A DNA stretch of 64,000 nt. Source: Utricularia gibba. Taxonomy: Eukaryota; Plantae; Magnoliophyta. The stretch is from assembly GCA_002189035.1 (NCBI GenBank), contig NEEC01000010.1, positions 1,736,001 to 1,800,000 on the forward strand, read 5' to 3'. Made by a program: the position numbers and the translations under genes. The number at the start of each line of letters is the position of its first letter. Positions within the stretch are counted from its first letter, which is position 1. The notes below the pieces were generated by a model. It worked only from the letters and a program-made list of their open reading frames with translations, searched no databases and was not told the DNA's origin. Shown here in pieces: positions 30,943 through 34,954 of this stretch.

Positions 30943-31357
30943 TCATCCATCATCTTTTACTGCTGCTGCTTCCCTTCTGCTCAGTGTAGACACTTGTGTA
31001 GCTCTGTTCACGTTTTGGTTGGACACGTTGCGGACACGCGTGCGTCTGGTTGTTGCTAGCCACCGTGTCCGTGACACCCCACGATGGTTTATGTTTCCGT
31101 TCCCTGTCTTAATAAGCTTGTGGCTTTGTTGGGCCGTTGCTGGGCCAGGCCTGTACAAGTTCGCGCTTTTCATCGAGTAAGGAGAGGGGCCCATGACAAG
31201 CCACGTAGGCACTAATGCATTTTTCACCACTTCTGATAAACTAGGTTGAAATGGAAGTTCGAAATGGCGTCTAGAAATTTGGTAACAGAACTTGTGAAAC
31301 GTTGGTCTAATCCGACGGAGGGTTTTGCGATTTGAAATAGTTGGTCAATGCTCGGGA

Positions 31358-31920
31358 ATGGAAGAAGGATCCAAGCTAGAATCTTTGCCGGAAGATGGAG
31401 AAAACGCCACTAACGATGCTAACGTTCCTCTTCGTTCCTGGACTCGGTAGTGAGTGGACTATCGTTCAATCTTCACGATTTTTCATGATCTCAAATATCT
31501 GTGGCTGTGATTCGACTGGAGATTACGAGGCTTCCACAGGAACCTGAAGTGCATGAAAGGAGTTTAAAAGTGGTGATCATCGGATTTTTGTTGGAGTCTT
31601 TATTGGCTGAGTATTGAATGCATTTTTGTGTAGAAGAATATGTCCTGGTACATTTGAGTACTTTACCAACATTGGTTTATGTTTGAGGGACAAAAGAACG
31701 GATGGCAATAGAGCTGCATCGCAAAAGTTTGCGCCTTTAAACTGGTCTAGCTATTTGGACCAAGAAGAAGATGTTCATATCTCAGGCATGTTAGTGGCGT
31801 GATAGTTTCCACTTCTTTACTTTTCACATTAGTCTTCCCGAAGCCTTTCTTCTTCGATTTGGTCCAGGTTTTTCATCTTTACAAAGCAGGAACTGAAGGC
31901 CTGGTTTTTTTATGTCTCCC
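31358..31920 (+). pseudogene. PPME1: 5'-truncated remnant (first three exons only) of protein phosphatase methylesterase 1
   Basis: MEEGSKLESLPED...|RAASQKFAPLNWSSYLDQEEDVHISG|VFHLYKAGTEGLVFLCL resembles the PPME1 N-terminus (KYSPVEWKSYFDKEDD, VFHVYMAGNEGPVVFCLHGGG). Similarity stops before HGGG and no GHSMGG motif follows. Confidence 0.65.
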
Positions 31921-32210
31921 TCAAATGTTTTTTCATTATGTTTCTCATCGGATCATATGTTTTACCACAGAAGTCGTGTTTTGCAGATTCCGGGAACTCG
32001 GGGTTCATCAACAAACAATTGAGCATGGTAACAGAAATGATTGGCGTACTCGGATTGTCTGTGTTGTTGTCTGCTCATGATCTTCCTGTTACATACCCTA
32101 CGACCAGAAGTGTCTGAACAAAGAACCTTCCTCATGTGGCTACATGAGTTTTAAATCAGAAAGGAAACAAGAACAAGATCTCCACTGGAAACAAAACAAA
32201 GCAACGTCAC

Positions 32211-32880
32211 TCAATTTGCTGTGGATTCCTTGAGGTACGCAATGAGGTCAGCTCGCTGTTGAGGATTCTCGAGTCCAGAAAAAGCTATCTTCTTCCCAGG
32301 TGTGTACTGTGTTCAACCAATCACAAACTTCAGGTCTATCATTCATCACAGGAAAAACAAGTTTCTCTCAAGAAAGTCGAGGAACAGAGTATGTGTACTA
32401 TTGGATCTATGTTATATGAGGGAATGTGAACCATGGTACAGCAAAAAAAAGCACCATAATAAAGGGATGATCCGAGGCCAAAACCTCCATAATCCATTTG
32501 TGCCTACTGATGCATTTACCTTTTTGGGGTTGAGTAGATATTCATAGAGGGTGTCCTCCTCCCATATGACACCATCCGCATTCTTAGTAGCCGCAGAATA
32601 TGAAAACCCAGGGCTTGTTCCCGACTGCTTTCCAAACAGTCCATTGAGGTTTGGCCCTAAACATCATTCACAAGCTTTCAGCAGAGGCTCATTCGTATGA
32701 TAGGAAACAAGCTTTTACTCAGGAAGAACCCTGGGTTTGGGAAAGTCTGAAGAAGGTACGCATATTACCATGTTTATGGGGAGCTCCCTTTTCAAGGCTG
32801 TGGCAAAAGCCACACTTTGTCTTGAATAGTTTTTCTCCCGCGTCTCTGTTTCCCGGAGGAGCTTCTGCAAACGTCGCCAT
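32211..32880 (-). CDS. CYTC: Divergent mitochondrial-type cytochrome c, 3 exons, intact ORF, Met80 replaced by Ile
   Basis: [37 protein letters not shown]|[46 protein letters not shown]|[35 protein letters not shown] junctions are in phase. Confidence 0.93.
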
Positions 32881-33130
32881 TTTGATCGAGGGTTCCACCC
32901 AGTCGGGGATGAAGGAGCTCGAAGGGGTCGCCGAATTTGACAGTCAGCGGAGTTTACAGATCATTAAATAGGGATGTGGAGATCTATGGGTTTCATCTCT
33001 TTTCAGTGGGCGCTGCGTGACCCGCCTGTGGTGCAGTATGGGTATCCCTAATCTATGCAACTCTCTAGAACAAGAAAATTGTGGCCAATGGGAGTCTTAC
33101 ACGTGTGTATCCTGTCATCGTTCTCCTTTG

Positions 33131-33968
33131 ATGGCCACGGCTGCACCCCGCCGCACGCACTCTTCTTCTTGTTAGCCCACTAAACCCATCTCCGGGATTC
33201 CTTCTAGCTGCCCAGTAAGGAATGTGGCGGGTAAAGCCACCGATTTGTCACAGCCATCCTGGTCTTCCTCTGCAGAAGCCGAAGAAGGCAGCAGTAGCGG
33301 ATTGGGTTCCGGTGGTACCGCTGGCGGCGCTGCCTAAAGGAGATCTTCTCATTGTCATACGGAGCGGGGAGGCAATTTTGCTCGTGTGTTGCAAAAATGA
33401 GGTCTTTGGCATTGAGAATAGGCCTCCGAGAGGTACATGTTTGTTCTATTGCCTCAAAGGGTTTGTTCAGTCCACTCAACGAATGATCTCATAAGAACAG
33501 AAATGGGTTCTGGGTCCCGGATTGAGGATTAAGATTAGAGAGGAATCTAGAGATCTAATGAATCATAGATTTACCCATTTTGTTCTAGCGGTTTAATGTG
33601 AATCCTGGCCTAGCACTTGGCTTCAAATTCGCTCTGCATATGCGATCCTGATCTTGAAGCAGCTTACTTCTAGGCTTGGCGATTGGTGATTGGAAAGATT
33701 TCTTCTTGGATACTAGAGTTTCCCTTTTAGAAGTGTTCTCCCCTGGTTAATGCTTAACATTTGGAAATCTGTTGCCGAGAGACTTGTGCATTATGCGTTT
33801 TATGTGCTGCAGGATGGATGCACTGTTTGTCCTTCTACTGAAAGCACATTTGATTCAAGAACGGGAGGGATCAAGGACTGTTATCCCAGGAGTCCTGTAC
33901 TGAGAGCTCCCACTCCACCTCTAGCAACCCTCTTCCTCTATCCCTTGAAAATCCAGGATGAGACATGA
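33131..33968 (+). pseudogene. PSB33: Pseudogene of PSB33 (Rieske-like thylakoid protein)
   Basis: KATD..., WVPVVPLAALPKG...GEAILL...NEVFGIENR, and exon 2 DGCTVCPSTESTFD...YPRSPVLR. In-frame TAG at 33173-33175, frameshift near 33300, conserved Trp residues changed to Cys, stop before the C-terminal TM region. Confidence 0.8.
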
Positions 33969-34954
33969 AAGATGCACCCAGGCATTTGAGTTAGAACATC
34001 AGGAAATATTGTTCGCTTTGCCACTGTTACCCCTCATCATGTGCAAATGAATTTTTATTTACTATATCGAAAAAAATCTTTTTTACTTTAATACTTTTAA
34101 TTATATCCACATTTAATTATATTCACAACCACACAGGTCCCTTGGAGACGCTTATTATACACACCATGGATTACATCTCGTGTTTTATTTAATATTTAAA
34201 ATATTCAACGAAGCACGCTGAAATTGACCCAAATCACTCGTTTTTTTTTGCGTGAAAAGTCAACGGACTTTCGGTGGTTGACTTTCAAAGTTCAGGAGCA
34301 CGTCGGCACCGCACGTCCACCATTAGAATCGTTGTCGGGCTTCGGACATAAAAAATCAGCATGTTATTTTAACATTTTTGGTATTCAAATGGTACCCGGT
34401 TTCACACTCGCATTCCCATTGTACGGTATTATTGTGTAAAATGGGAATTATATATATACGATCATTCTAAATCTATTTTTATTAATTCGATCAAAAATCA
34501 AGTCTTTACTAGAAAATATTGTTGTTGGCGGTTGCCTACTTGTAGGTGCATGGGGCATTGACCACGTTTCATTGTAAACCTTTCGATAAAACTCTAGATA
34601 TAATTTAACTTTACATTAAATTGATTTTAAATTAAACTACTATTTTAATTTAAAAACTTCTTATCAAATACATATATTAAATAAAATATACTTTCAAACC
34701 ACGCACTAACTAATGGTTTTAGATTTTACTTAGAAGAATGTATTGTGTAATATTTATTTGATCATTTTGTTTATTCTTTTCATTTTATGTGTAATAATAA
34801 ACTTGAAAATGAATATAAATAATTGAAATAATTGTCATAAGGTATGAACTTGGTGGACAAAAAAAAGTTTAATTTGAAGTCTCCTTGGCGGGTTGGAATA
34901 TATTAAGGTTATGTATGTGGACACGAATCATCTCCCTCCGGTGATAAGGAAGCG

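Follow-up and report, generated by a model that had tools for sequence, protein, structure and literature searches.

An expressed cytochrome c gene of Utricularia gibba lacks the Met80 haem ligand and probably encodes a non-respiratory haem protein

Overview

The bladderwort Utricularia gibba carries an intact, expressed cytochrome c gene in which the codon for Met80, the sixth ligand of the haem iron, encodes isoleucine. Met80 ligation is a textbook invariant of mitochondrial cytochrome c, and its natural loss in an expressed and otherwise well-kept gene is unexpected. The gene lies in a 64,000-nt stretch of contig NEEC01000010.1 (positions 1,736,001 to 1,800,000, forward strand), hereafter the window, whose numbering is used throughout. 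The most likely reading of its sequence, to which a probability of roughly 0.6 is attached, is that it encodes a functional, non-respiratory haem protein with altered sixth ligation. It would be an expressed duplicate of the plant mitochondrial cytochrome c gene; a canonical U. gibba copy is assumed, and the listed members of the protein clusters include none from U. gibba or the Lentibulariaceae.

Beyond what an earlier note had recognised from the letters of this DNA, the gene is a variant of a recurrent plant pattern in which residue 80 is usually lysine. At least seven other plant lineages, a lower bound drawn from the best 120 matches listed, carry Met80-less cytochrome c-like genes altered at the same sites.

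Gene structure and expression

The gene occupies positions 32880-32211 on the minus strand and consists of three exons, with a CDS of 345 nt encoding 114 amino acids (Table 1). The earlier note had described a three-exon, in-phase open reading frame of about 113 residues; the intact three-exon frame holds, and the length is corrected to 114. The haem-attachment motif is encoded in exon 1, which is followed directly by its donor GT. The equivalents of Trp59, Tyr67 and Phe82 (W69, Y77 and F92) are all kept, and the segment spanning residues 70-80 carries three substitutions: I75T, T78K and M80I. In these respects, and in the ATA codon read on the minus strand at the Met80 position, the predicted protein agrees with the earlier description.

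Introns after codon 37 (phase 1) and Lys73 (phase 0) follow the plant nuclear cytochrome c pattern, and intron 1 has the same position as in 11 other plant cytochrome c genes. The exons measure 112, 137 and 96 nt, compared with 112, 134 and 93-96 nt in 11 plant genes (exon 1 of Helianthus is 103 nt). No damage is seen in the start codon, the reading frame or any of the four splice sites, and the sole indel is an in-frame codon, by which exon 2 exceeds its 134-nt counterparts in other plants.

Table 1. Features of the U. gibba cytochrome c gene in the window.
Feature	Position	Strand	Description
Exon 1 CDS	32769-32880	minus	ATG at 32880-32878; residues 1-37 and first base of codon 38
CGFCH haem-attachment motif	32800-32814	minus	Cys14, Cys17 and His18 equivalents; Ala15 to Gly, Gln16 to Phe
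Intron 1	32657-32768	minus	112 nt; GT..AG; phase 1; skipped in RNA contigs X6, X7 and X11
Exon 2	32520-32656	minus	137 nt; R38K, N52T and one-codon insertion (KNADGVIW)
Intron 2	32307-32519	minus	213 nt; GT..AG; phase 0; skipped in RNA contigs X6, X7 and X11
Exon 3 CDS	32211-32306	minus	Ligand loop, LENPQQ (K86E, K87N) and C-terminal helix; TGA at 32213-32211
Codon 90 (Met80 equivalent)	32286-32288	minus	ATA, encoding Ile
3' UTR to poly(A) site	32019-32210	minus	To the end of contig X11
5' UTR	32881-33048	minus	X11 starts at 32932; X7, the longest RNA contig, reaches 33048; putative transcription start

Contigs of four public runs were aligned over positions 31000-34000: X4, a 2019 DNA contig from a different sample, and X6, X7 and X11, which are RNA contigs from three studies. 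Relative to the window, X4 shows 12 base differences and five single-base indels, none of them within codon 90. All five indels fall outside the CDS. These indels, at 31686, 31904, 31949, 33790 and 33975, are non-coding and represent either long-read assembly errors or polymorphism. The CDS contains three SNPs, of which those at 32532 and 32610 are synonymous and that at 32219 gives A113T in the C-terminal tail.

The RNA contigs of all three studies cover codon 90 without difference from the window. Furthermore, they join 32306 to 32520 and 32655/32656 to 32768/32769, exactly removing the predicted introns. Contig X11 ends at 32019 and continues into a run of T on the plus strand, which corresponds to poly(A) on the minus strand; the 3' side of X7 extends to 31980. 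In a search of sequencing runs, nine U. gibba RNA runs contained all sampled words of exon 3 and the 3' UTR, and none outside U. gibba runs did. The ATA codon and the spliced transcripts, both singled out for checking in the earlier note, are thus borne out by independent DNA and RNA.

The single-base indels relative to X4 suggest that the assembly contains errors, and could raise the suspicion that codon 90 is itself an assembly or sequencing error, or that ATA is read or edited to ATG at the RNA level. This is ruled out by the agreement of the independent DNA contig and of the RNA contigs of three studies at the codon itself, and by the position of every indel difference outside the CDS; its probability is negligible. 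There is no internal stop, frameshift, or lost start or splice site, and spliced RNA is present. The gene is real, intact, transcribed, spliced and polyadenylated, and it is neither a silent pseudogene nor an assembly error.

If transcription starts at 33048, the 5' leader contains two short upstream ORFs with ATGs at approximately 32996 and 32965; X11 begins downstream of both of these ATGs. A neighbouring gene lies head-to-head at 33148-34000 (plus strand), with exons at approximately 33222-33430 and from 33811 onward; in an RNA contig, 33430 is joined to 33811 across a GT..AG intron. The first of these exons matches Rieske_2 (PF13806; E 0.0099) only weakly and below threshold. The RNA of this neighbour starts about 100 bp from the 33048 end of the longest cytochrome c-like RNA contig, and because these divergent ends are so close the two genes may share a bidirectional promoter. 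Between the divergent genes, upstream of the cytochrome c-like gene, lie a site II-like TGGGCT (33174-33179) and a CACGTG G-box (33100-33105). Site II-like and G-box elements are reported in Arabidopsis cytochrome c promoters.

Divergence of the encoded protein

Profile match, fold and gene structure all mark the U. gibba protein as a cytochrome c. Residues 14-110 match PF00034 at 40.3 bits, against a gathering cut-off of 21.3. An AlphaFold (AF2) model of moderate confidence, built without haem (pLDDT 78.6, pTM 0.74), has rice cytochrome c 1CCR as its top Foldseek match (TM 0.85, E 1.8e-14). Canonical plant cytochromes c (rice 1CCR; Arabidopsis CYTC-1 and CYTC-2; the Lamiales Buddleja and Erythranthe) are up to 75% identical to it, and share PF00034, CxxCH, His18, Trp59, Tyr67, Phe82, the N-terminal plant extension, and the positions and phases of both introns.

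No protein more than 75% identical was present among 5.8 billion proteins, a collection from which the U. gibba product itself is absent, and a profile search returned no homologue closer than the 75% match. The best match among JGI metagenome contigs was only 68% identical, and neither collection contained a close orthologue. The terminal branch leading to the U. gibba gene in the all-column tree has a length of 0.36, compared with a median of 0.086.

Conservation was judged against 119 canonical green-plant sequences selected for Met at position 80, a column being counted as conserved at ≥95% and residues being given in horse numbering. The U. gibba protein is changed at 11 of 65 conserved columns and at 17 of 47 variable columns (Fisher p=0.027). 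By this comparison its substitutions appear still to avoid conserved columns, yet they hit an extraordinary set of sites: I9L, Q16F, Q28H, R38K, N52T, I75T, T78K, M80I, V81A, K86E and K87N. The protein also differs from the canonical ones in an extra residue inserted before Trp59 and in its net charge, which is +2 compared with +6 to +8 in canonical copies. Gln16 is 100% conserved in the 119 canonical sequences.

The substitutions cluster in three places, namely the Met80 loop, the hydrogen-bond network of that loop and the docking face, a distribution that fits the non-respiratory role suggested in the earlier note. Residues 16, 28, 81, 86 and 87, which we take from the yeast cytochrome c-bc1 complex to ring the exposed haem edge and form the docking face, are all replaced. 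Asn52, Tyr67 and Thr78 are described as an 'entatic triad' by which Met80 ligation is stabilised, and Lys ligation arises in variants of Thr78 (PMC12188557). In the U. gibba protein two of these three residues (N52T, T78K) are replaced together with the ligand itself.

It is improbable that the protein nevertheless remains a respiratory carrier, perhaps even the main one, with lysine or another sixth ligand and co-adapted to the bladderwort respiratory chain. Six of the eight docking lysines (8, 13, 27, 72, 73 and 79) are kept, and the word depth of the RNA contigs, a poor measure of expression, is close to that of neighbouring genes, both as such a carrier would predict. Against it stand the replacement of Lys86 by Glu and Lys87 by Asn, the reduced net charge, and the invariance of Met80 in the 119 canonical sequences, a set itself selected for that residue. 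Alkaline-form cytochrome c lacks the high potential needed between cytochrome c1 and CuA. Likewise, loss of Met80 or ligation by Lys is reported to abolish that potential (PMC12188557), which also counts against a respiratory carrier.

Met80-less copies in other plants

The Met80-less group is an informal one, defined by a residue other than Met at position 80 of an intact cytochrome c, and the U. gibba gene belongs to it. Its other members (Table 2) include Populus euphratica XP_011031557.1, Musa acuminata XP_009401107, Helianthus annuus XP_022027848.1, Nepenthes gracilis GMH05535.1, Ceratopteris KP509_12G070200 and Riccia R1sor_010671. The sites commonly altered are Gln16, which becomes His, Tyr or Phe in most copies, and residues 28, 38, 52, 80, 81 and 87. 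The U. gibba protein shows this co-replacement pattern with Phe16, His28, Glu86 and Asn87, and it shares with the Met80-less copies the same gene structure and a reduced positive charge.

Table 2. Met80-less cytochrome c-like copies in other plant lineages.
Lineage	Residue 80 or loop at 78-83	Other changes
Populus	Loop 78-83 TKKDFHG or TKKDFPG	Gln16 to Tyr and R38K (P. euphratica); N52H in other Populus species
Nepenthes	Lys80	Gln16 to His
Asteraceae (Helianthus, Ambrosia, Cynara, Deinandra)	TKKMFHG, TKKAFPG	Gln16 to Phe, Tyr or His (not Cynara)
Zingiberales (Musa, Ensete, Canna, Curcuma, Zingiber)	P-LKKKF or P-LKAKF	Gln16 to His, R38K, N52S
Ceratopteris (fern)	Lys80	Gln16 to His
Riccia (liverwort)	Lys80	Gln16 to Phe, R38K
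Lycium	M80I, near-canonical copy	R38K

Residue 80 is Lys in six of eight Met80-less lineages. Lys at this position looks directional, as it is specified by just one of the nine codons that lie a single base change from ATG. Whereas nearly all Met80-less copies carry Lys80 (Ala in Curcuma and Zingiber), the U. gibba protein has Ile80 and a new Lys78 beside Lys79. It also departs from the common type in lacking the Pro83-to-His and Leu94-to-Val changes of the Populus and Asteraceae copies: residue 83 is Ser, rather than His or Pro, and Leu94 is kept.

The overlap between lineages was evaluated in a recount of 61 columns, in which ten conserved sites are changed in U. gibba. The Zingiberales copies share eight of these ten (p=1.6e-5), and Nepenthes, Deinandra and Riccia share six each (p=6e-4). 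Similarly, four of the five changes in Populus fall at sites changed in U. gibba (p=0.002). Judged by these alignments, the overlap with U. gibba is far above chance.

Met80-less and canonical copies coexist in Populus, Nepenthes, Ceratopteris, Riccia, Musa, Zingiber and Ambrosia, a further argument against the view that a Met80-less protein serves as respiratory carrier. Part of this same-site change may stem from the lifting of respiratory constraint and not from a new function common to the copies.

Two genes lie near this pattern. Oryza Os01g0885000 keeps Met80, has an adjoining one-residue deletion (YTPA-KMGFNG), CAYCH and N52D, and has seven of the altered sites in common; its divergent lineage, conserved in at least five Oryza species, is possibly an intermediate or alternative form of the same trend. 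Lycium ferocissimum XP_059289610.1, a single gene model, combines M80I (TKIVFPG) with R38K and N70K.

Evolutionary origin

The all-column tree places the U. gibba gene beside the Os01g0885000 lineage of rice and the copies of the Zingiberales (99/80, 90/81). When 18 trait columns are dropped, the Populus, Nepenthes and Ceratopteris copies group with the canonical genes of their own species, and the U. gibba gene takes an unresolved place among the angiosperms; shared ancestry with other Met80-less genes is then unsupported. These trees rest on approximately 100 columns. A single ancient Met80-less clade was considered and rejected: its tree signal disappears without the trait columns, under which monophyly has a p-AU of 0.0035, whereas with all columns it is not rejected by the AU test (p 0.07).

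Because Met80-less genes fall with the canonical copy of their own lineage once the trait columns are removed, recurrent evolution is indicated, and the trees, together with the gene positions given below, favour multiple derivations from canonical genes. Gene conversion between ancient tandem pairs, keeping the two members alike, is a possible alternative. Populus euphratica carries a tandem pair (L004:2930-4175 and L004:10001-11329) in which the Met80Lys gene lies 6 kb downstream of the canonical copy, and the two differ by one synonymous and eight non-synonymous changes. At the start of intron 2 the two copies have identical translations, which suggests that the duplication is recent or that gene conversion has acted. 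In Ceratopteris, the Met80-less and canonical genes have consecutive locus tags.

A single-exon neighbour of family PF27754 (UCP031277) accompanies the odd rice copy (L001), the canonical Erythranthe gene (L003) and the Met80-less Deinandra gene (L011). PF27754 and cytochrome c look like a conserved microsyntenic block. The PF27754 neighbour is absent from the U. gibba window, and the U. gibba locus has none of the neighbours described here.

Selection

Exact CDSs were taken from 11 genomic loci, all with the same three-exon structure, and substitution rates were obtained by the Nei-Gojobori method. The dN/dS ratio is 0.10-0.16 among Zingiberales Met80-less copies and 0.17-0.40 among those of the Asteraceae, compared with 0.04 between two canonical Lamiales genes. 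Because of these ratios of 0.10-0.40, the Met80-less copies of both groups are judged to be maintained by purifying selection, less tightly than the respiratory gene. The recurrence of the same changes in independent lineages, two of them under measurable purifying selection, adds to the support for the non-respiratory role proposed in the earlier note.

The earlier note had also proposed a dN/dS comparison with orthologues in relatives; no orthologue was found in the protein and metagenome collections, and the synonymous sites of the U. gibba gene are saturated against every comparator. Relative to the Lamiales canonical genes, dN is only 0.18 despite this saturation, which fits constraint on the protein. 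A neutral simulation carried to the same protein divergence, approximately 44 substitutions, left the frame open in 14% of copies and kept CxxCH as well in 5%. Because the frame stays open in 14% of neutral runs, intactness alone is weak to moderate evidence for function. Further support comes from the undamaged splice sites, the lack of frameshifts and the consistency of expression.

These results bear on a different account, in which the gene is a transcribed but functionless duplicate in slow decay, whose constraint has relaxed so that Met80 and other respiratory residues have drifted in a frame that happens to be unbroken so far. The long terminal branch, the 11 changed near-invariant sites, the lack of an orthologue among 5.8 billion proteins or JGI metagenome contigs and the simulated survival rates are all compatible with such decay. 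So, too, is the excess of non-synonymous changes in the Populus copy, and the near-canonical M80I copy of Lycium may be a case of this kind.

Several observations nevertheless make decay, the leading alternative, less likely for U. gibba. The start codon, four splice sites and frame are intact, and the only indel preserves the frame. U. gibba is known for deletion bias, and the survival of a dead 345-nt frame is less likely for that reason. In addition, spliced RNA occurs in three studies, with poly(A) in X11 and exon 3 words in nine RNA runs. Finally, the substitutions avoid conserved columns (p=0.027), and the sites that they alter match those altered in lineages for which purifying selection was measured. 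Function as a non-respiratory haem protein is therefore preferred to decay.

Comparison with known systems

Plasmodium falciparum cytochrome c-2 is likewise a naturally occurring additional cytochrome c of mitochondria whose haem crevice has diverged; it is reported to be hemylated, with a five-coordinate haem that exogenous ligands can reach, and not to be required for electron transport (PMC10175771). It differs from the U. gibba protein in keeping Met80 in its sequence, in being <32% identical to the human protein and in having long extensions. The U. gibba protein, in contrast, shares 75% identity with canonical plant cytochrome c and lacks the methionine.

Met80-off forms of cytochrome c, such as M80A, the alkaline Lys-ligated conformer and T78V/T49V, have Lys-, water- or O2-bound haem and more peroxidase activity (PMC12188557, PMC10041640). 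The U. gibba protein, as judged from its sequence, resembles them in the loss of the Met-Fe bond and in a perturbed Asn52-Tyr67-Thr78 network. Those forms are laboratory mutants or transient states, whereas the U. gibba gene is natural, genomically fixed and expressed.

Proposed function and mechanism

From the engineered and alkaline forms and from Plasmodium, we infer the probable haem attachment, location, ligation and potential of the U. gibba protein. After import into the intermembrane space, it would receive its haem from the plant Ccm machinery (System I), whose recognition would depend mainly on CxxCH, a motif that is kept. The haem iron would then be ligated by a lysine of the loop (Lys78, Lys79, Lys72 or Lys73), as in alkaline cytochrome c, or alternatively would be five-coordinate or water-bound. 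In either state, the redox potential would be lowered by hundreds of millivolts and the iron would be open to small ligands.

Because of the altered ligation, the loss of two docking lysines and the net charge of +2 rather than +6 to +8, such a protein would be a poor carrier between complexes III and IV. More probably, it would serve a different partner as a peroxidase-like protein, a ligand-binding protein or a redox protein of low potential.

A broader reading is put forward tentatively, at a little less than even odds: that land plants have repeatedly turned spare cytochrome c copies into a second kind of haem protein, of which the U. gibba gene would be one case. Such conversions may have happened independently about seven times or more, in plants ranging from liverworts to eudicots, each perhaps involving the same handful of sites. 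In this broader reading, ligation would pass from Met80 to Lys at that position or to a neighbouring Lys, Gln16 would become aromatic or His, and residues 28, 38, 52, 81 and 87 would change alongside.

Biological significance

Full-text literature, in a coverage that largely leaves out subscription journals, contained no description of a natural Met80-less plant cytochrome c. The chemistry of Met80-off cytochrome c, comprising peroxidase activity, ligand binding and low potential, has so far been known mainly from engineered mutants and apoptosis-related conformers. The parallel loss of Met80 in plants, in some cases under purifying selection, suggests that this chemistry has been fixed as a stable function.

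If the broader reading is correct, plant mitochondria would contain a lysine-ligated or open-haem cytochrome c whose conserved task has yet to be described, and the protein would dock with a partner other than complexes III and IV. The plant copies would also provide natural proteins with which His/Lys-ligated or five-coordinate cytochrome c could be tested in a living cell, as well as a clean case of repeatable molecular evolution. For U. gibba itself, the gene would add a nuclear component to the long discussion of the unusual respiration of bladderworts.
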